A stretch of DNA of 63,557 bases, filler included, from Pelomyxa schiedti (GCA_020536535.1; 6 parts of 6 records of this genome joined end to end with filler, not necessarily neighbours in it); one strand, 5' to 3'; positions 24,514-38,002 are shown, numbered from the whole stretch's first letter. Notes: generated by a model not told the origin, from the sequence alone. Translations and numbers: made by a program.

Positions 24514-25342
24514 AATAGCTATTGGAAGGCTATCACATAGCACCGTACACCACATTCTTTCATTCCTGTCCCCTGTCCACTGGTTCTGAATATGCCTCAA
24601 CAATCAGCAGAAATAAACGGAAGTGGTAAACATAAGTACCAACAGCCCCAGTGACAGCAATAGCAACAACAAGAAACAAAACGAAGAAAACAGAGACATA
24701 AGCGGAGACAACTTCAGAGCAAAGCATAACCCAAGCTCAGAAACAACACCACAGTTCACGCTCGTAACCCTTGTAACTTTGTGCATTACAGCCACAAATA
24801 GCTCCCTTTAAATAAAAAAAAAATCGTTTGAAACAACACACGACACCAACAGAGTGTTGTGAAAATTTGGAGGTTGCTCGGTGCATGTTCGGAGGTGGGT
24901 CCGAGGGAGAGGAAATGAGCGCCTCGGGCGCCCTCTTTCCCGTGGTCATGGCCATTATGGGATGGTTGCAGAGTCCCGAAATGGTGCAAGGATTTGGATG
25001 GAGGCAACCTCTTCGCCAAATCGAACTCCCCCTGAACTCGCTTCACAACATCCATACTACCGCGCAGGAAAGCCATTTCAACGAGTGGAGTTGTTCAAGC
25101 CACTTGGAAGCGCAGCAAGTTGTTGGAAAAGAGTCTGAAAGATCAGAAACGATCTTTCAGAGGTTGGCCCCATGGTGTTTGGGGCAGGCCGCCACAGGGC
25201 AAAACACTGACACTTCCAGGTCAGTGAGTTGTTGGATAGCACAATTTTACCGTTATGAAAAATGTGTAGTACAACGCAAAGAGATATCTCCCATTTTCAT
25301 TCAAAAAAACAAGTTCTCATCTTGTTCTTAGCAAGGGAGGTG

Positions 25343-28300
25343 TCACAAGAGCGTGCAGTCACCGTTTGAAGCTGGGGGTGGTGGTGGTATTGCCTTCACG
25401 GCATCTATCAGTTTTTGTATGGATCTTGAGTTCTGCCCTTGGAGTTGGTTTTGCATGGCGGTCATTGCGGCAAGCCTTTGGGTGTACTCCATTGATTGGA
25501 CTTCCAGCGCTTTGGACATCTTGGCATTGTTCTCCGTCAGTTCCTTGGTCATTGCCTCGAACTTGGCGAGCTGAGCCTCCCACTTATCTTCGGCAAGCCT
25601 GTGAACATCACTTGGAACAATTTCCACAATTGGGGCATCGAGAACGAAGTCCTTGATCTCTTGTGTAGGTTCATAGTACGCGTCATTTGCGTCATCAAGA
25701 CTTGCCACCTTTGGGAAGAAACCAATGTGTTTTGTGACAGGATGGCCACTCAGGATTGCCCCAACCAACATCTCCCTGTCAGATGGGTTGTTGAGTATTC
25801 TGGAGTGGGTTATCAGGGGGATTTTGTTGACGATGATGGAGTAATTCCCTTGAATCACTGGGCAGGCCTCATGAACAAGCGACATTGTCACTTGGTCGTC
25901 GGGACGAACGCGACCAGCCTCGAGGGTCATCACAAAAAATATCTTGAAGAGGCCACCAGCTTTCAGGGCGTCATGGATCTCCAGAGCGGCCTTCTTCCTG
26001 GATACCAAGTCAGAAAGCCCAGGGGTGTCCACCCAGATGTTTCCCAACGAGTCGGTAACCTTCTGGCACACCTGGGTCAGGCCATGCCCAAACGAAATGC
26101 CTGACAGGGGTCGGGGAACAAGGAGTTCAGGATTGTGCTCTTTCCAGTGCCTGGGTTTCCAATGAGAATGATTTGGATGGGCTTTACCGGTGTTGCAGCT
26201 GTGGTCTCAGAGTAAACTTGTAAATGAGTATTAGTGTGGATTGGCTGGGCACTAAAGCGTTGCTCAGCATAACACGAAATGTCACTAACTGTTTGTTGCC
26301 TCACCGGGAAGGTTTGGAACAAGTCAATTTCTTTCATGTGGCACGTTTGCTGGACACAACGGCTGCATTTCTCATCCTTGCTGGGTGACACATAGGGCTG
26401 TTGAATGGGAGGGTCCCTTCTATCACTGGAAATCTGTGGAAAAATCTTCGAAATTTTGGAAATCAGTGTTCCGATGGTCTGGAAGTTTTCTTTCGTGCTT
26501 AAAGTGTACAAAAGTGAGCGTCTCACGTTCAGTACTTCCTTAATGTGGTCAGGGTGGATGGAACTGTTCCCAAGAAAGTTGGATACAAAGAACACATCAC
26601 GGCCACGGTCAAACTGTGTGATATCCTCCAGTGTCCCAATCTGTGTGATGGCACTCGCCCCTGTCAGTTCACCACCCATATCGCAGGCAGGGGGGCACAG
26701 AAGGAGCCAGCGCATGTCGAGTGTAAGGGACTTCTTCAACCTCATAATCGATGAACATGAAACTTCAAGGAATCTCTGTGTTGAAATGTCTCCAGGGTTT
26801 GTGCAGTTCACAATGGCGACATCAGCAATTGTTGTGAGGAAGGTCACAAGCTCATTATCATAGTTCACCATGGGCTTGTCATCTGCTGCAAGTCCCTCAG
26901 TATCCAAGACCATGATGTGGTACTCACGGCCAACAGCTTTTGAGGTGGAAACTGAGTGGCTTGATGCTGAGTGTGAGAGGGGAGGGGCCGTCAGTGTCCT
27001 TTCGGCCCTTAGAATCTGCATTCTTATGCCTGGCGTGCGCTTTTCTGTGTTCGCCCAAAAGTTGCGGTTGAACATTGTGCTCAACAGAGTGGAGTTCCCA
27101 GCACCCATCGTTGTTGCAACAACAAAGACCGGCTTGTCACCCCCGCCGATGCACACGCCAATGTGATCAAACACCTTCCTTGTGCACTGGGTGTTGAAGC
27201 CAGAATGCTCATTTATTAGCTCATACGAGCATCCTTGGAAGACAAGCTCAGCCAACTTCTTGGTCAGAGCCCCAACGAGGCCATCCCCACCCAGTCCAGT
27301 CTCAAGGAATGCTTCACAGAAGTAAGTAATCTCCTTGAGGAGATTACTCCAGTTCACACTGAAATCGGCTTCCTCCCTGTGGCACACCTGGTCCAGGCAG
27401 TCCAGAAACAGCTTCAGCATGTCGGTTTTCAGCACTATGACGGATGATATGAAGGCCTGAATGGCTGGATGAAGTGGCTCCAGTAGCTGAGGCTTGATTG
27501 CGTTTTTCAGTGCTGCCTGCCTGGAGCAGCTTGTACCTTGGTTCCCGTGGCGGGAACTGAGAATCTTCCTTGCCAGTGGGGTGAGCTCCTCGTGGAACGG
27601 GCCCTTTGCCTTTCTGTCGTTGTCAGGGGCGCTCAGTGGTGCAGCACCATCGGGCTCTTCACAACCCATCAGAGAGACCACAGCCTTCGCCACCTTGAAT
27701 GCCTCCTTGATGAAGGGGTGCTCAAGATCGGAATGTGTGCAGTTTGTGCCAACTCTTTTCTTCAGCGTTTGCCATGAGTGGCCTTGTGTGGCATTGAGTG
27801 TCGAGATGGCACGCCCCACCTCATCCGTTATCCATGCCGACACAGTGGACTTCTTAGAAGCCAAGCCCATACTGTCTCCTTCTTCTCCTTCAAGGTGTCG
27901 GACATGGAAATTCGTGGGGTGCTCCGCATGAAACGCGTCGATTTCCTCCCGTTGGGTATTCTCCCCTGCAACGATGCAGAAGGCGACGTGGCTGGGGTTG
28001 GCAGCAAGGAACGCAGTGAACCGAGCCCTCGCCTGTGCTGTCCAGGTGGTAATGACGACGAGGAAGTCGCACTGTGACCACATGAAGCTCTCGTTTGTTG
28101 TTGACTTGCACCCAGGGCGCATGTTCGCAATGATGGTGTTGAAGTTGAAGGCCTCAGACCTTTCACGTGTGCATGTTGTCTGTATCTCGATGCACCCTTG
28201 GCTGTGCTTGAGGTTGCCTGGAACTTCGGAGAATATTTCCGTCTCGAAGAAAGTGGCGTTGATCAGCCGCTCCTTGAACGTGTTGGCGATACTGCACTCG

Positions 28301-31300
28301 TCAGTTTGGAGGAACCCAACAAGAGGGGCGTGCATCCTGGACAGCGAGCAGGAGACCACACGCCCAGCCTCAACCCACATCTTTTGTACCTGACCAAGGT
28401 TGTAGAGAAGGACGCTGCCATCAGCAAGCATGAATGGGAGTGGTTGGTGACAGAGGTCGATGTTGTTGAAGAAGAGTGTCTTCAGGTCGTACGGCGAACT
28501 CTGAATGACGCAATGCAGGATGTCAACGGGGTGGAGGAGTGGGGTGGAGGAACCTGCGCCATGCTCAACGGGTACGTTCAATTGGTTGTAGTTGGACATC
28601 TTGAAAATCAGCCGGTGGAGGAAGTGTATGATGTAGTTGTCGCGCGTCGGTGCGCTGGTCACAACCGAGCAACCAAAGGCCCCCTGGAGACCACCAAGTG
28701 GGTCCTCCCTCACGACGAGGAGCTTGTCCCAGCTGAGTTCCGTCACGCCCTGTTCCACAAACTCCGGGATGGTGGGAAGGATGTTGTGCTCTGGAAGGAG
28801 TTCAGGCCCCTGGAGCCACGGCGCCAGATGGCGGCAATGCTCGGCCAGCCTCCCATTGAACAACGAGACGAACTCTTGCACTTTTTCCTTGGAGTTTGCA
28901 AGATCCGGCTGGAGAAGAAACTCCCACATCAGAAGAAGGAAGGTGATACCGCCGTCTTCTTCCTTCTCCTTATCTTTCCATTTCTCAGCCTCCCCTTCTC
29001 GCCACTGCAAAAACTTCCCAACTACATGATGGAAAAGCTGCAAACTGTTGTGATGTGCTGGCAGCCCCTCTGAGGCCGTCGAGGCGAAAGATAAGAATTC
29101 TGAAAGTTGTTTTTCCCTTCTGGCCTGGCAGTCACGCTTGTGTTGCCTCATCGTGCTTCTGGAAAAAGATTGCACACAATGGAAGCAGGTGACAAGTGCA
29201 GATGGGCATCTTGTTGAGTGATCGCTCCGCTTCCTTGAGGCTGAGTAATTGCTGTTTGGTGGCAGCTTGCTCCGGCAGTCTTCGCAGAACACTGGAACAG
29301 AAACGCATTCACTGCTCTCGTGCGTAGCTATTGCCTCCACCGCGATCTGCCTGTTGCAATATACGCACTGCGTGAGTGGGCTGCAGTAATGCTTTGCTGC
29401 GGTCTCAAAGGTTCTTTGACAGTTGGAGCAGAACCTCTCCAAGCTGCAGTTGTGTGGCAGCTCCTTCAAGTAATTGCATTTCTCGCAAAGCTCGAGACGT
29501 GCACCCTCTCCACGGCAGCTTTTAAGGTGAGAAACCAAAGCTCGCCTCCGTATTTGCTCCCCACAGCTGGGGCATTTAAAGTTGCCATGGCATGAAAGGT
29601 TCTGATGTTCCTGAATTTTCGCAGCATCAATTTCGGTGTGACAGAAAATGCACACCAACAAGTGTGTTGGTCTCTTGCTGCACGCCTCGGCCATGTGCCG
29701 TTCTTTGTCAATAATTCTCACTTTTTCTCCACATTCAGGGCATTCAACTTCAGCCAGCTGAATGCACTGCTTCAAATGACTGGGTAAACCACTTGATGGT
29801 GCTCTTTGCCCACAGTGTGGACAAACGATGCATGCGGTTGGGGTGGGTAAAAGCAGTGGATCCATCAAATCAGTCTCTGGAAGAGTGTGAAATGCCTCTT
29901 CATCAACTCTTTCAGGCAGTTTCACTTTTATCTCTTGTATCAAGGAAGAAAGCTTTGCAGCGCGTTCACACATCACTATTCTATACTCATCTGATAGTTT
30001 CACGTGAATCGGCACCAGGGGGTTGTTCGGTAGTGTGAATCCCACCTGGAAATCTGGTTTTCTGCATTCCTGGCCATACGTGGACTTGCCGTCGCCAGCA
30101 CGGTGCTCAAGTTCAGCATCAGGCAAGTGCTCCTCGGCTTTGCCACCACAAAGTAAAAGCTGAACCAACTGCCAGAAATAAGTTAAAAGTTGAGGGGGTT
30201 GGGGACCACACCTTCTTGCACAGGTCATAGAGTAAATTCTTAAAGTTGACGCGAATGGAGCCCCTCATGCACATGCCAAATAGACCGACGTCGAAGCACG
30301 CATCCACGCCGATCATGGAAAAATCGTTGCCACCAGCAGATAACCACCCATCAACACATAGTGACCTCACATCCAGCACGTCAGGAGTGAGCTGTTGCAG
30401 CATCGATGTGATCAGGTCATAACCCTTTGAAATCGTAGTTTCCACGGACTCTGCCATACAAACGGTAAGCAAAATAAGATCCCTGATGCCTCTTGGAAGT
30501 GCATTGCAGCCAGGGGCCCCTGGAGAAACAATATCATTGGCCCGTTTTAGCGCCTCATCGCACACGTCAAAAATTCCACCAACACATTTCTTTAAGCCAC
30601 CAAGAATAACTGTTGCAACACTGCCCGTGGAGGAAACGTTTCCTAAAAGAACTCTGAGGCATGGGAGTTTAGTTTCCCAAGTGGCTTCCATGTGGCCGCG
30701 CAGAACAATTTCGTTGTCTTGCGCCTCATATGAAGAGTTCACTGCCTTGACGGTGTTTTCTTCAGTATTTGCGGTGCCACGCAGGGCCAGGCCGGCGCTG
30801 ATCTTCATGCTCGCACCAGACCCCTTCCTGGCTTCGAAGTCGATCTGATGTCTCAGCCGAACCGCGTTAATGGTCGGAAGAAGCTGCAGGTCCTCGATCC
30901 AATCAAAGTATGCCTTTCCTATCACAGTGTCCACATATAGGTCAAGGCTGGTTTTCCCCATGGTTCCTTCTCCAGCTTCAAACCAGGCAACTTGTCCCAC
31001 GCGACATCTGATCCCTTTTGGAAAGACCAGGTGGATCTGCAGACGCGAGGGAGCACCAGCAGAGAAAGAGCAATACATGAGAACACTGGCATCTATTCCG
31101 AGCCATGACAAATGCCCAGCAATCGCAATGCACTTCTCTTCACCATCCACCAAGGGGAAGTCAGCCCTCCCGGTTTTCTCCTTGACCAGATCCACAAGAG
31201 GGCTGCTGTCTATTGGTTTGCCATCGAACTTGGGCCTACCGTCCATGGAACCCTCTCTGGAGTGACTCAACGAGGGGATTGATCCCAGATTGTGGCCGTC

Positions 31301-34300
31301 CATTTTGAAGAGAAGCTGAAGATCCGTCACATCAGGGAAAACTTGGTCAAGGAAGGCCACATCCTTGTGGCTGCATCCGGTGACGAGCCGAACGAGCGAT
31401 CCCATTGTGATCCGTTGGCATGAGAGGTAACCCGTGGATATCGTCGGGATCCCGCCACTTCCCACCACCACGTGCAGGGCAGCCTCCATTTCTGGTTGTT
31501 GGCCGTCAGTCCACACTGCCCGAACATCACAGCCAAGTGTGAATGACTGCACCCTGGATGAGATTTCAACCTCGCCTCGAAGTCCGTGTGCGGCCAGACA
31601 TTTAAATTGTGGCAAAGAAAAGGGCAAGGGGATCTCGGTTGCAGGATGACCATCAAAGTCCAGCGAAACTGAAGCCAAGAGATGGGCTGATCTCTCCACC
31701 TCCATGGTTGCTCTCAATGGCAAACCCCAAGCAAAGTGAAAAGTGGTCTGGCCTGTGAAGCTCGTGGAGTTAATTTTGAAAGTCGTTTCGTCGGTCCCAG
31801 GCTGAAGCCCCACACCCGCGAACAGCTCAAAGCCGGCAAATTTACAAAGCAGGTATGGCTCACCGTCTGAGAACACATACTTGGCCGAAACGGGTCTCGC
31901 CTGACAGTCAAATAAAGAGTAAGTGTCCTCGGCCAGGGAGGAAACGTCGATCTTGACACAGAAAGAGGAAGCTGCATCGCTGAGCAGCAGCCGCGAGATT
32001 TTTCGGGACTGGGAAGGGGAAAGGGAACAGATGTCACTTGATGTCTGACTGCTCTTGGTGAAGGGGCACCTCTCGATGCTGCCAGGGGATGCCTCGGCAC
32101 TGCTGTACAGCCACTCAAGCGACGTTGTTGATGCGTCGGCGGGCAGCTTTCCTTCCAGACAGAGCTCCTCCATCATTGAGGAGAGGTACAGGTTCTCGAG
32201 TTCGACTGCCATGGCAGTCTTGGTTGCGTGGTGCACGATGCACCCTTGGCAGTTATTCGCATCAGACCCTCCATCTTCGGTTGACACCTGAAGGTTGAGG
32301 GCCAAAGCGAAGGAGCTTGATGCGTCGTCGCTGGCACCATCCTGCCCCCGCGGCAGGAGCAAAAATAATTTATAGTCCTGAAGGACAAACTGTTCCAGCA
32401 GCTGTTTGGCCAAATCGGAGACAGGGACACTCATACTGCACAGAACGGTGCACAGGTCGACGGAACCGCCAGCGTTGCTACGCCTGTCAGCTTCTTGCGT
32501 CGCAGATGAAACCGCTGCACTTGCAAGTGGCACCTGTGCCTTGCGCATTGTGATGAATTCGCTGCCTGTGTCCTTGCCGCCGAGAGTGAACTGACAGTCG
32601 ATGCGCAGGGGGAGACCAAAGAGGCACAAATCCTCAACATGGACAGTGCAACTCTCAGGCTCCCACCTGTAACTTCTTGCACCCAGACCGAAGTCAACTT
32701 CGCATTGGAAGACAGTTTCTTCTTGGATGGCAGATCGCAGCAAATCATGCTGGCTGATCAGCACCAACAATCTCATGGCTGCACTCAGTCCAAGGTTGCC
32801 TCTGACAGTTGACAGGCCGCGCTTGGTCACAGTAATTTCTGTGTGATAAACTGCTCCACCAGGTTCTCCAGGCTGTTCCACGAGTTGCACTCGAACCTTT
32901 GACCTACAATCTTCAGAGAAAGGGGCAGAGAGCTCCAACTTCTCCAAGTGGGCACTGACTGCATCCCCGTAACTGCAGCTGGCGCAAGTCCACATGACGG
33001 AGAGGTCAGAAAGGGTGGTGACAGCGCCAAACAGGCTGGTGCCCAAAAACCAAAGTACATCACCTGGTACAAGTGAAACCAACCTGTGCCTGGTTGCTTC
33101 ATCAAGGTCGTAGTCCTGCAGGGTAAGCCTCCATGACTTCCGGCTTCCTTCGTCGGATATACATTCCATCCTGCAGTTCTCCTTGAGGTGCAGTTCCTTG
33201 CGAATTGTCTCTCCAATTGATGTCATCGGTGCCGCTGTGGCGGCGGCTGTTGGACCTTCTTGGCTCCCTGTGCCATCAGCTCCTGTAACAGGGGCTTCCC
33301 TGTCACCCGTTGAATGTGAACTGTGCCCTTGATTGCTGTCGCATGGTTCCTTTCGCATCCCATCTTGTTGCTGTTTGTCCACTGAGGTTTTGCCGCCAAC
33401 ATCCTTGTGAACATGGTTTCCATGGGGTGCATTATCATGCTGCATCGAACTGGAACTTGTTAAAGCAGGAATTCCTGCATTACTTGCAATATTAGACGAA
33501 CCTCGCTCTGCCACATTCACCCTGTTTCTTTCTGTGTGATGTGGTGGTGTCTGGTTCTCTGGGGTGGTGGGTGGTGAAACCAAGGTTGCCCTGTCCCCGT
33601 GGCCAAAGAGGTGCGTGGTTGGAAACATATAAAGAGGTTCAGGTGGTAACGGCAGCCAAGATGTTTCCTCTGAACAGTTTTCCGTGGACTTGTAAAAGTA
33701 AATCTTGCCTGTTGTACCTTGTTCATGTACCAGTTGCACTGTAACTGTGTAAGGGTTTGCATCCTCCTCTGATTTGTTGACAGGTGGCTCGCGTTGCTGT
33801 GGATGCCATATCAAACACATAACGCGGTTCTTGGTGGAGGCACCAACACCACCACCCCTGGAATGAGAAAAATCAACCTGGATCTCGAAAAAGCCATCTC
33901 GACAAGTGTTGAAACCCATATCAGCCAGAAACACTTGTGGTGGTGCCCAGCTTTGAACTGTTCTACCATTGTCGCGAAGGTTAACTGTCTCAAGAATGTC
34001 AGATGGCACAACCCAGTGGCAGTCAAGGCAAACCCAGGGAAGAGGTGAAGATGTTGCAGAAGAAGAACTTAAACTCACTGGATTTTCCGTTATGGCCACT
34101 TGTTGGCTCACTTCTGGTGGCACCCCCTGGTTTGGTGCTGCAGAACCCAAACCCAAAACACCGAATGGAGAGGGAGCTGCAGAAATGGCACCATTGGATG
34201 GCCCACTGCTTGCAGTTGCAGCATACTGTGGCGAAGGTGGATTGGTGGAGATCGAAATCCACCGTGCAGAAGACATGTACACCCTCCCATTCAACGTGTT

Positions 34301-36263
34301 TGCAGGGTTTGAGACCAACCTTCGCCCCATCAGGGCACTCAAGGATGAGCAGCTGCGAAATCTTCCAGAGGCGTCAAAGCACTTTGATTTCATTTGGGCC
34401 AGATGCATGTTCCAGGTTTCTTCTCCCACTTGGCACGTTGCCCAGGAATAAGCTGCCTCACCCCTTTTTTCCAGCAATGCTGCACAGCGGTGAAATGGTT
34501 TCCTTTTAAATTTGAGAGGAGGCCTGTTAATACTGAGAGGAATGGTGCCCAAAACTTCATCGTTGGATGGGTCTTCCACCCAAGCCCCACAAGGCAGAAT
34601 ATAGAGGTCATCTTCATGTTGAATCAGCACATCACACAGAAACACGACCTCCTTTCCACATGATGTTCCTGTGAAAAGGGCGACTCTGTTGTGAGGCAAA
34701 GAGCGTGGCTGGGCATAACACAAAATTTTGTTGACTGTTTGGTGATTCTTCACCTCGAAAGGTTGGCATGGATCACCTGAGGCCTTCATGAGGCATGTTT
34801 GGTTGACACAATAACTGCAGTCCTCATCCTTGCTGGTGGAGCTTTGCTCATTTCTTGGTTTTTTGCACTGCTTGTCTCCTGAGACTTTCTTGGTCTTGAA
34901 CTGGTGAGACCTTTTTCGGGAGGGATTTTGTTCTGGCCTTGCTTCTGGGAGGTGACTGTATTGCGGAGCTGTTGGGGGAGCAGTGGGTGAAGCCAGGGGA
35001 GGAAGTGGAGTGGAACCTTGCCATGGTGTTGCGACATACTGCTGGGTAAACTGTTGTGTTTGCTGTGGATAGATTGAAGAATTTCTGGGTGTGTTGATCG
35101 GTTGTGTGGGAATGTTTTGTTGAGGAGGATAAATAGGTGCAGGACCATATTGGGCACTGGTCATCGCTGTGTATGCAGTTTGTGATGTGTGGTAAAGCTG
35201 GTCAGAGGATGTATAAGTCTGACTTTGAGTAGCTGGGTTGGTGTCTGGGTGTTGGGGGGGGTAGGATGGATACTGTGGTGCATAGGGAGGACTTGCCGCG
35301 TGCGTGAGTGAGGATTGTGGTTGGAACCAGGTATCTTGTTGTGTCAAATACTGCTGCTGATGTGTGGGTGAGGGTCCATATGGCCTGACTACACTGGGTT
35401 GCATCTCAGGGTATTGTGTTAGATACTGACTGGTTGGTGGAGGAGGAGCACTATTGCCTGTTGTGCGAACTACATCCCTGTATGGAGACTGTGTAAGTAC
35501 CACTGGGTTTGAGGGCAACTGTGGTTGTGGTCCTCCTGTCACTCTCGGCGGCATTTGGATACTGTCCACCTCGGGTTGTACCAGTGGTGACATTATCTGT
35601 GCCTGAGAGGGAACATGTGATTGGGCTGAAACTTGTTGAATTTGAGTGACGTGGTGCTGTGTAAACTGCTGTATTTGCTGTGGATAGATTGAAGAATTAC
35701 TGGGTGCGTTGGTTGGTTGTATGGGAACTTTTTGTTGAGGGGGATCAATGGGTGGAGGACCACACCAGGCGCTTGCCGTTGTTGTGTGTGCAGTTTGTGA
35801 TGTGTTGTAAAGCTGGTCAGAGGATGTATAAGTCTTAGTTTGGTGAGCTAGGCTGGGGTATGGTTGTTGTTGTGGCAGGTTTGAGGGCAATAGGGCAGGG
35901 TGAGTGACAGGGGGAATGGCAGTGCACGTGGAAGTGGCAGCACCCGGGGCAGTTTCGGGTAGGAGAGAATACAACGGGGGTGCAACTGGAAAAGGAGTAA
36001 ACTGGTAACCCAATTGTAGGGGCACCTGTCGTCCACAGCACGTTGGAGCTGAAGAAGAGGGGTCTTGTGGTTGCGAGTGAGTAACCTCATTCCCTGTGCC
36101 GTTTGAGCTTCGAGGCAGTATGGAACTTGCTGCTTGTAAGTACTCTTGCAACACCTCACGATTTTGTCTGCTTGTGAATGGTCAAAAAGAAAAAACAGTT
36201 TCGTGGGAAACGAAAAAAAAAAAAGAAAAAAACAAAGGGGTGGAAATACTGCCAGGACGACAT
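25343..36263 (-). CDS. Giant multidomain GTPase (~3,600 aa): P/Q-rich, Cys module, SPRY-like, beta-rich, TRAF-like Zn fingers, VLIG/URGCP region, AIG1-like GTPase, coiled coil, CaaX
   Basis: ATG at 36263. GT-AG introns at 36249-36168 and 30211-30169 join the ORFs in frame. VLIG motifs LHPVDIL, GCIEI and VLDTEGL...DNELVTF. AIG1-like motifs GNPGTGKST, DTPG and IVNK. One frameshift near 26105. Ends CTLL*. Confidence 0.8.
35040..35835 (-). repeat. ~190-bp internal coding duplication (35040-35225 / 35650-35835)
   Basis: TYTSSDQLYxTSQTA...NSSIYPQQxQQFTQ occurs twice. Confidence 0.9.
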
Positions 36264-38002
36264 GTGCTTCCGATGAGGAGCTCAAACACACCAATGTGCT
36301 TCCCAGAAAATTGGCTAATAAAAAAAACACGGACCGTCGCGTTCAGAGTTTAGGTTTTGTGTTGTTGTACACAACGAATTCAAAGAACAAACGGACTGCC
36401 GAGTGAATTTTATATCAAATTTTATTTCTGCTGCATCTTTTCAGAAGATGGGTAAATAAAAAAAACACCAGACCATCGCGTTTCTAAAGTTTAGGTTTTT
36501 TTGCTAATCACAACAGATTCGATTAGATCCGTGCACATCGAATTCAAAGAATAAGAGGTGATCGAATCGATTACGGACGTAACAGCCACAACTCAGCGCG
36601 GACATGGAACGTTTTCACACACAAGTGAAGGAGTGTCTCGCACAAAACATCAACCAAGGAATGCAATCTTTTTCGCTGCAGCAGGGGTCTCAACGTCGGA
36701 AGACGTTGNNNNNNNNNNNNNNNNNNNNNNNNNNNNNNNNNNNNNNNNNNNNTTAATTAATTAANNNNNNNNNNNNNNNNNNNNNNNNNNNNNNNNNNNN
36801 NNNNNNNNCTGAGTCATCACTTACCAAGTTCGGAAATCAAGTTCACAGAAAGATCATCGAGATACCCAAGACCTTTCCCTTGACTTTGGAATCCTTTATA
36901 AACACACACCGAGTCACTTCATTTCTACACAAATATACGAAAACACAAATACAAAATCCCAACACAAATACCTACACCCAAATGTATCCATCCATTCCAA
37001 GATGAATAAAATACTTTGTGCCTCTTTGTTCTCCTTTGGTGCAGTTTCCTTCCCACCCACTGAAGGAAACAGAGGGCTTGTGAGGAGGGAAGGAAGAAGA
37101 GCACTGACATTGCTGATATTACCGCGAAGCACCAGAATCTCATGACAAGATCGCTGCGGAACTGTGGAAGTTCAAGGAAGCTACCAAAGGCAAGAATTCA
37201 GCTGTAATACTCTGATGCATATATTACTGCTAGAAATTGTCCTAATGGACAACCGCCTCAAGTGGACATGGTAACAACCACTATACTCTGTGCATTACCC
37301 ATCTGTAAGAACCTGGTACCTTATAATCGATACAATTTCAGGTATTGCTCTTTCACTACTCTTACTCTTTTTTTTCGAGTCGGCTCACTAGAAAAAACTT
37401 CCTCACCACCCAGTGTACTAAATTCTATTCCTGCTGGGACTGGTATATGTTGGTATTTGTGTCAGCCGGTAAATAAACCCTGATTTGAACAGTGTCCACC
37501 TTGTGGAATTCCGGTGGCCATTTCCGGTTCTAATATTTACACCAAATAATAATTTTAATTAAACAATTTTGGTTCGGCTTAAGAGTGCGCGACTTTTCTT
37601 GTGTGGTGGTGCGGTGTTCTGCGGCTAACATCATTCGGTGACGCCATCGTGGATTTCGCTGCTGTCTCGGCGCGATCCTTGATGTAGGTGCCGACGTGAT
37701 CAAGTTGTGGATTCCATTCTCGCACATTAGCTTCGCGGCCATCATGTTGATCATCTAAAGTTCTATTTCTATCCAGACCACTAACACCATTATTCCAGAT
37801 TTGGAAGGGCAGCCCTGGCAACTTGTGGAAGGTGACACTATTTGTTGAAGAATTTTTGTTCCCCAAACCTTTGAAGACTGGTAATGTGGTGCTCAATTGT
37901 TCGACTTGAAAGGAAGCAGAGCAGGTGGGATGGGAGGAGCAGCAGCAGTCCAGTTCAGTTCATTTCGACTCGGAAAAAACCAACATTCGCTTCAAAAGCC
38001 AA

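Follow-up and report, generated by a model that had tools for sequence, protein, structure and literature searches.

The large defence GTPases GBP1, GBP2 and GBP5 form coats on membranes by means of a prenyl group at their C-terminus. Proteins of the GVIN1/VLIG family are giant and cytosolic, and carry a URGCP domain followed by a G domain of the dynamin superfamily. A role in defence has only recently been reported for this family; human GVIN1 forms a coat on intracellular Burkholderia (bioRxiv 10.1101/2025.03.24.645074). AIG1/GIMAP proteins combine a TRAFAC G domain, recognisable by its G1 box, DTPG and a hydrophobic box past G3, with a coiled coil and a C-terminus that targets membranes; Archamoebae have AIG1 families too, including Entamoeba histolytica (PMC5884625). 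Here we describe a locus of Pelomyxa schiedti in which a VLIG/URGCP module is followed by a small, marginally AIG1-like GTPase. It occupies positions 25343-36263, on the minus strand, of the window, that is, of the whole stretch of DNA analysed (63,557 nucleotides, filler included, from assembly GCA_020536535.1). The explanation that we favour, and to which we give about an even chance, is a single large gene of ~3,350-3,600 codons that is read through to a C-terminal CTLL and encodes a membrane-coating or scaffolding GTPase. The gene layout, a 43-nt intron and the domain homologies are directly observed.

An AIG1-type G domain and a URGCP/URGCP_GTPase module also share a single chain in teleosts, namely in predicted GVIN1-like proteins of Sardina pilchardus (XP_062387315.1) and Astyanax mexicanus (XP_049318924.1). 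The architecture had been put forward as undescribed in a preliminary description made from the sequence alone; as far as the pairing of AIG1 and VLIG domains goes, the fish proteins precede it, but the order is opposite there and the other modules differ. In the teleost proteins the AIG1 domain lies N-terminal to the URGCP and URGCP_GTPase domains and is strong (178-213 bits), whereas the Pelomyxa GTPase sits at the C-terminus and is AIG1-like by a narrow margin; the teleost proteins also have neither a CaaX box nor a zinc-finger array. The two fusions probably arose independently of each other. What differs here is the amoebozoan host, the C-terminal position of the small GTPase, the CaaL box and the remaining modules. 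No paper on a VLIG/URGCP relative in an amoeba or other protist was found in the literature, although the library searched is incomplete and absence is not proven by it.

The Pelomyxa protein resembles VLIG-1, GVIN1 and URGCP in its giant size and in the succession of URGCP and dynamin-superfamily G domains. It differs from them in its amoebozoan source, a P-loop reading GAGNST, the loss of the HQN motif, the absence of a detectable GVIN1_C domain, and the flanking modules. With AIG1/GIMAP proteins it shares the set of features listed above; it departs from them, including the E. histolytica family, in the G4 motif (NKxx and not a full NKxD in most members of its own small-GTPase family), in the giant fusion and in a frame break. 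The likeness to GBPs is one of analogy, and the prenylatable module is the small AIG1-like domain rather than the dynamin-like one.

Reading frames and the split G domain

The locus lies on contig JAHLWZ010001219.1 of assembly GCA_020536535.1, all 12,195 bp of which correspond to window positions 24514-36708. The amoeban host that had been proposed is thus correct. Pelomyxa schiedti is an anaerobic, free-living archamoeba; SPAdes was used to assemble its genome from the amplified DNA of single cells, on the basis of Illumina and Nanopore reads (PMC8887013). Three long minus-strand open reading frames (ORFs) are present, as previously described. Since the GC content of the contig is ~50%, ORFs of 1383 and 2011 codons are not due to chance. 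The following features bear on how the three are joined:

30119-36154, minus strand: ORF1 (2011 aa)
30169-30211, minus strand: intron 1, a 43-nt GT-AG intron linking ORF1 and ORF2
26077-30228, minus strand: ORF2 (1383 aa)
34703-34888, minus strand: basic stretch and Cys motif, copy 1 (DEDCSYCVNQTC...), matching ORF2 residues 1265-1324
26257-26436, minus strand: Cys motif, copy 2 (DEKCSRCVQQTC...), ORF2 residues 1265-1324
26107-26184, minus strand: small GTPase, N-terminal portion (ORF2 frame), including the G1 box GNPGTGKST at 26160-26134
26107-26121, minus strand: frame break, a one-base shift in the C-rich run ttg ttc ccc gac ccc
25601-26083, minus strand: remainder of the small GTPase, in the ORF3 frame, with GLTQVCQ, DTPGL (26029-26015) and VNK (25831-25823)
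25343-26071, minus strand: ORF3 (242 aa), C-terminus CTLL
25391-25609, minus strand: C-terminal long helix or coiled coil, from a single-sequence AF2 model
25343-25357, minus strand: CaaX box CTLL and stop codon, at the end of ORF3

ORF1 and ORF2 are joined by splicing. Removal of the interval from GT (30211) to AG (30169) fuses DLCKK to LVQLLLCGGK and keeps the frame of both ORFs. The public protein model KAH3732226.1 consists of ORF1 from Met188 (35593), the same 43-nt splice, and ORF2 up to its stop. Two paralogs are continuous across the junction (DLCKK-LIQFVL in P0006, DIAKK-LLQFLL in P0007), and at a paralogous locus (L003) two tblastn matches lie ~43 nt apart at the same point as the intron. 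Public model, paralog read-through and the gap at L003 together confirm the GT-AG intron that had been proposed at 30211-30169.

The join between ORF2 and ORF3 is of a different kind. ORF2 stops 17 residues past the G1 box, and the ORF3 frame is open upstream to ~26200, so that the two frames overlap by ~40 codons. On a profile built from 11 standalone relatives of the small GTPase, ORF2 residues 1349-1382 align with positions 5-36 and ORF3 residues 1-225 with positions 42-266 (235 bits). When an X is placed at the break, the GTPase scores ~298 bits as one domain, with a plateau for switch points 26127-26109; this local profile scoring was the sole read-through, all searches being run exon by exon. 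In the standalone relatives, the G1 box continues directly into F-x-SG-[VI]-[SA]-F-G-x-GLT-x-VCQ...DTPGL. By this alignment, the tail of ORF2 and ORF3 are one G domain split by a 1-nt frame change. The preliminary description had placed the G1 box of a second GTPase at the end of ORF2 and the rest of the domain in ORF3, which the profile alignment bears out; its claim that all three ORFs form one gene stands in so far as one G domain spans ORF2 and ORF3, but the connection is a frame break and not a splice.

A GT-AG intron between ORF2 and ORF3 was considered and rejected, as the region 26119-26060, inspected by hand, offers no interval of the required length (2 mod 3). A 29-nt GC-AG interval is compatible with the frame, but it is too short to be plausible and would delete conserved residues. 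No match to the junction turned up in metagenome contigs scanned for the exact pattern. Given that the assembly derives from single-cell amplified DNA, SPAdes, and Illumina and Nanopore reads, an insertion or deletion error in the C-rich run is plausible.

The small GTPase has its G1-G4 motifs in GNPGTGKST, the T of GLTQ, DTPG and NK; these motifs are conserved across the aligned family, most members of which lack the D of NKxD. A word search with the ORF3 piece retrieved standalone small GTPases of 228-375 aa, which belong to Mastigella eilhardi, Pelomyxa sp. JSP and metagenomes. Those of M. eilhardi (EP01105_P000289) and Pelomyxa sp. JSP (EP01106_P003242 and P010964) are 38-46% identical to it over the G domain and coiled coil, but each is a protein in its own right (246-379 aa) and begins at a start codon of its own. 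The ORF3 piece alone reaches only 11.5 bits (E 0.18) against AIG1 (PF04548), because G1 sits in the other frame. For two relatives that are intact, P0152 and P0156, the AIG1 scores are 27.8 and 32.2 bits (cutoff 27), and those on MMR_HSR1 are higher, at 33-38 bits. The earlier label 'AIG1-like' is therefore retained with a reservation: the intact relatives pass the AIG1 cutoff narrowly (27.8-32.2 against 27) but fit MMR_HSR1 better, and the scores place the domain, marginally, in an Archamoebae family on the border between the two.

Towards the C-terminus, a single-sequence AF2 model of the 264-aa ORF3 piece predicts a helix at residues 176-248 (pLDDT ~90; overall pLDDT 48), and a proline run separates this helix from CTLL. 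As had been noted, the small GTPase ends in this tetrapeptide, with Cys at -4 and Leu last, directly before the stop codon. CTLL is a predicted CaaX box of the geranylgeranyl type, which would matter only with a frame break that is not real. Among the relatives, the metagenomic P0156 has CTLL at its end as well, and the Mastigella protein ends in a hydrophobic tail. The ends of P0152 and P0156 (hydrophobic tail and CTLL) mirror the variety of tail anchors and lipid anchors among GIMAPs and GBPs.

In the public annotation the locus is divided into two genes, one of 3157 aa (Pelo_16943, KAH3732226.1) and one of 195 aa (25930-25343). A giant URGCP-like gene and, overlapping the end of its ORF with its own 5' end, an independent small GTPase gene would agree with this annotation of a separate 195-aa gene and with the standalone nature of the relatives, in which a Met precedes G1 by 1-46 residues; a potential start, M1298, lies 59 residues upstream of G1. 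The annotated 195-aa product has, however, no G1, G2 or G3 and cannot be a GTPase; in view of these missing motifs, the annotated gene is an artefact of the frame break. A separate GTPase gene would need the same frame correction as the single gene, and its G1 box is in frame with the 1383-codon ORF2, with no intervening stop. There is no ATG between M1298 and the G1 box (residue 1357), and M1298 itself falls within the Cys motif, whose other copy is internal in ORF1. Because G1 continues ORF2 without a stop or nearby start, and because the sole defect is a 1-nt shift in one domain, two genes are very unlikely.

The VLIG/URGCP module and the zinc fingers

The single large gene would comprise, upstream of the small GTPase, these further parts of ORF2:

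29128-29832, minus strand: C2HC zinc fingers, ~9 units, ORF2 residues 133-367
27928-28536, minus strand: URGCP domain (PF25496), ORF2 residues 565-767 (32.6 bits against a cutoff of 27, E 7e-8)
26731-27363, minus strand: URGCP-like (VLIG-type) GTPase domain (PF25683), ORF2 residues 956-1166

The URGCP match is seen when the segment is scanned alone; it is unlisted in the scan of the whole of ORF2, and is marked weak among the hits of the public model. PF25683 scores 54.5 bits against a cutoff of 55, half a bit short, with an E value of 1e-14 over profile positions 107-310 of 396. The order, URGCP followed by a URGCP-type G domain, is that of the VLIG-1/GVIN1/URGCP family. An exhaustive search yields 185 relatives. 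Those that carry a name are called 'interferon-induced very large GTPase 1-like' and come from clams, fish and a kiwi, all of them animals; the two closest are metagenomic proteins that score strongly for URGCP and URGCP_GTPase, and one of the two (P0002) also has GVIN1_C. A scan against NCBIfam gave only P-loop noise. With a clear sequence relative in an archamoeba, the VLIG/GVIN1/URGCP module exists outside animals.

The module is truncated and altered. No match to GVIN1_C (PF26772) was found in ORF2 residues 900-1383 at E values up to 10, and only ~100 residues separate the VLIG-type G domain from the Cys motif. All 25 aligned relatives have GKST in the P-loop, against GAGNST here (27105-27088, with the Asn codon AAC at 27094-27096); DTEG is retained (26907-26890). 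In the alignment with the same 25 relatives, the HQN motif is lost and the domain carries a low-complexity insert of 17 residues. What had been called a VLIG/URGCP region is thus upheld by the order of PF25496 and PF25683 and by the GVIN1-like relatives; the P-loop lysine is absent from its G domain, and no GVIN1_C is found. The Asn codon AAC is one third-position change away from Lys. A hidden in-frame intron in the insert was also considered and rejected, as the sole GTGAGT...AG interval would remove the conserved DTEG.

A second URGCP-type G-domain fragment occurs elsewhere in the genome, in the 204-aa protein Pelo_5692 (P0005, L002:2845-3600). It has an intact GKS P-loop, lies on an 8-kb contig among unrelated genes, and shows neither a URGCP domain nor the C-terminal part; possible explanations are a relic of a gene or a model that is broken.

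The zinc fingers that precede the module follow the spacing CxxC-x7-18-H-x1-4-C, with x11 and x3-4 in most units. They weakly match CEP104_ZnF (33.9 bits against a cutoff of 27.4) and, below its cutoff, zf_UBZ (21.6 bits); a TRAFD1/FLN29 finger (2d9k) also matches the array weakly, with E 0.0018. The profile zf-TRAF (PF02176) is not among the Pfam matches of the giant protein. The earlier term 'TRAF-like' accordingly holds for the C2HC array with its TRAF-type spacing and for the TRAFD1 match, but not for the zf-TRAF profile itself. In the paralog P0004, zf-TRAF is found at 28.4 bits in a different part of the chain.

The ORF1-like part and the zinc fingers together define a family of Pelomyxa paralogs (P0006, P0004, P0009 and P0007), the other members of which are without the URGCP module. 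With such paralogs on one side and standalone small GTPases on the other, the locus is a lineage-specific fusion of three kinds of part. The same distribution could be produced artificially if the contig were an assembly or amplification chimera of an ORF1-like/zinc-finger gene, a URGCP-like gene and a small-GTPase gene. Multiple-displacement amplification yields chimeras, and a 52-nt motif is duplicated inside the gene. This motif is the core of the Cys motif, CxxCxxxxC, and is 83% identical between its copies (26333-26384 and 34785-34836); over 62 aa the two Cys motifs are 45% identical. The 52-nt match suggests that an internal duplication, or gene conversion, took place recently. A random junction would, however, rarely be in frame, and the zinc fingers and the URGCP module share the uninterrupted 1383-codon ORF; the composition along the contig does not change abruptly, and the sole break is a 1-nt shift within one domain and not between domains. 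A chimera is extremely improbable.

Layout, proposed mode of action and significance

Several points weigh against a single functional gene. The deposited sequence contains the frame break, and the annotation has two genes at the locus. The loss of the P-loop lysine and of HQN, taken with the frame break, could mean that the 3' half of the gene is decaying. Close relatives of the small GTPase stand alone in the Mastigella and other-Pelomyxa transcriptomes; no other protein with the exact layout was found, and the gene's own cluster has one member. The case further concerns one locus in a fragmentary single-cell assembly, and a decaying lineage-specific gene would account for the break and the degenerate P-loop equally well. 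If the break is real, the product ends at 26077 (3157 aa, or somewhat longer at the 5' end) and retains the P-loop alone of its second G domain; ORF3 would be a recently disabled remnant and the 3' half possibly on its way to a pseudogene. The presence of the break in both sequence and annotation, the already degenerate upstream G domain (P-loop K to N, HQN lost, 17-residue insert) and the singleton status of the gene are consistent with this. Decay sits less well with an ORF3 that is open over 242 codons, keeps all family motifs (DTPG, the TLExGRxRPDD box and NK) and retains 38-46% identity to its relatives, nor would it lead one to expect an ORF2 open over 1383 codons; the site, moreover, lies in a C-rich run of an amplified single-cell assembly. 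On balance a real break is somewhat unlikely.

For the gene read through to CTLL, the frame change would have arisen in assembly or amplification, or else as a very recent lesion, with a native product of ~3,400-3,600 aa that reaches the CaaX box. From N- to C-terminus, this product would comprise a P/Q-rich region, a lineage-specific portion common to at least four Pelomyxa paralogs and made up of a possible SPRY-like module and a beta-rich domain, and the C2HC zinc fingers, followed by the truncated VLIG/URGCP module without GVIN1_C, the small TRAFAC GTPase, the coiled coil and the CaaL box. The C-terminal GTPase would be the active module; together with the coiled coil and a geranylgeranyl group, it would bring the protein to a membrane and could drive nucleotide-dependent self-association. 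As a non-hydrolysing scaffold or regulator would serve the VLIG-type domain, with its GAGNST P-loop, and the zinc fingers and N-terminal modules would bind partners. The outcome would be a GTPase that coats or scaffolds membranes, possibly those of compartments holding bacteria or symbionts. Mechanism and function are proposed here by analogy with GIMAPs, prenylated GBPs and the GVIN1 coat, which also counts against the proposal.

The module is joined to zinc fingers of TRAF-type spacing and to a prenylatable AIG1-like GTPase, and these are the kinds of part used in cell-autonomous immunity of animals and plants. That teleosts have paired AIG1 and VLIG domains in the opposite order suggests that the two types of GTPase work well together. 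Pelomyxa schiedti harbours obligate bacterial and archaeal endosymbionts (PMC10579272), and in such a host a membrane-targeted GTPase is a reasonable candidate for the handling of symbionts or prey. A putative role in handling bacteria or obligate endosymbionts is plausible by the same analogies. The single-chain sensor-scaffold-effector for defence or symbiont control put forward in the preliminary description was an overstatement and stands as a conjecture. A bolder version can be envisaged, in which an independently built double GTPase, comparable to the teleost AIG1+VLIG proteins, uses a non-hydrolysing VLIG scaffold or regulator (GNS P-loop) and an active, geranylgeranylated AIG1-like anchor to polymerise on membranes that enclose bacteria, as a protist forerunner of, or convergent counterpart to, coats of the GVIN1/GBP type; we regard this as quite unlikely.

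The 5' end, the N-terminal region and the surroundings

The remaining features belong to ORF1 and to the sequence before it:

36250-36263, minus strand: putative exon 1 (ATG and 11 nt), derived by hand
36168-36249, minus strand: putative 82-nt GT-AG intron with long pyrimidine tracts, derived by hand
34790-36154, minus strand: P/Q/S/T-rich low-complexity region, ORF1 residues 1-455
33569-34042, minus strand: candidate SPRY/Neuralized-like module, ORF1 residues 705-862
30212-32794, minus strand: beta-rich domain, ORF1 residues 1121-1981, common to the paralogs P0004, P0006, P0007 and P0009

The first ATG of ORF1 is at residue 188, and is preceded by 187 open codons. The low-complexity region (P 16.5%, Q 14.3%, S 11.2%, T 10.8%) contains two in-frame 222-nt repeats at 35033-35254 and 35648-35869, which are 82% identical and spaced by 615 nt; of the two, one precedes the start codon of the annotation. 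The open codons and the in-frame repeat copy before M188 suggest that coding sequence extends upstream of it, and hence that the public model Pelo_16943 is too short at its 5' end. A putative solution, found by hand, starts from the ATG at 36263 and removes the interval between GT (36249) and AG (36168), which joins the ORF1 frame and fits the start given in the preliminary description. The ~10.9-kb gene (25343-36263) would then have one confirmed and one putative intron; the average in the P. schiedti genome is 7.43 introns per gene (PMC8887013). The paralog P0006 is likewise free of introns across ~4.7 kb of its ORF1-like part. ORF1 residues 91-361 are up to 61% identical over 130 aa to a low-complexity stretch (L003:22981-23859) in a gene with an RRM domain, located on a different Pelomyxa contig, either as a shared low-complexity module or through similar composition.

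ORF1 residues 705-862 look SPRY-like by eye and are kept in the paralog P0006 (42% identity). Neither SPRY (PF00622) nor any other Pfam family matched them at E values up to 10, and a search of the PDB with a two-sequence profile of the region gave no match. Language-model features score 0.90 to Neuralized and SPRY clusters, at a recognition lower than usual. The SPRY-like module that had been proposed thus finds no profile match, and the language-model result keeps it as a weak lead only.

The beta-rich domain is 30-39% identical to its Pelomyxa paralogs. An AF2 model made from five sequences (pLDDT 52.9) consists mostly of long strands and a helical hairpin. Foldseek searches of the PDB and VIA-align returned only generic beta-sheet and helical-hairpin matches for this model, and nothing specific. 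A shape search of the Atlas finds YhdP, AsmA, YdbH and TamB clusters at weak TM values of 0.23-0.37 for a model of this low pLDDT; this resemblance is a lead only, and an AsmA/VPS13-like label is not applied, given the low model confidence and the generic nature of the PDB matches. PDB sequence searches with the whole of ORF1 and with ORF3 gave nothing useful, and a word-based protein search with ORF1 residues 480-2011 and ORF2 residues 400-1383 retrieved only the gene's own public model; it took the exhaustive search to bring up relatives.

The contig contains no tandem array, and an Rfam scan of it found no RNA family. Downstream of the giant gene, a minus-strand ORF of 96 codons that begins with ATG lies at 24786-25076 and is absent from the public annotation. 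Upstream of the gene, at 36299-36554, there are 2-3 copies of a repeat unit at a spacing of 132-164 nt, each with a T-run followed by a conserved box of 20-30 nt; this repeat may be a duplicated promoter-proximal element.

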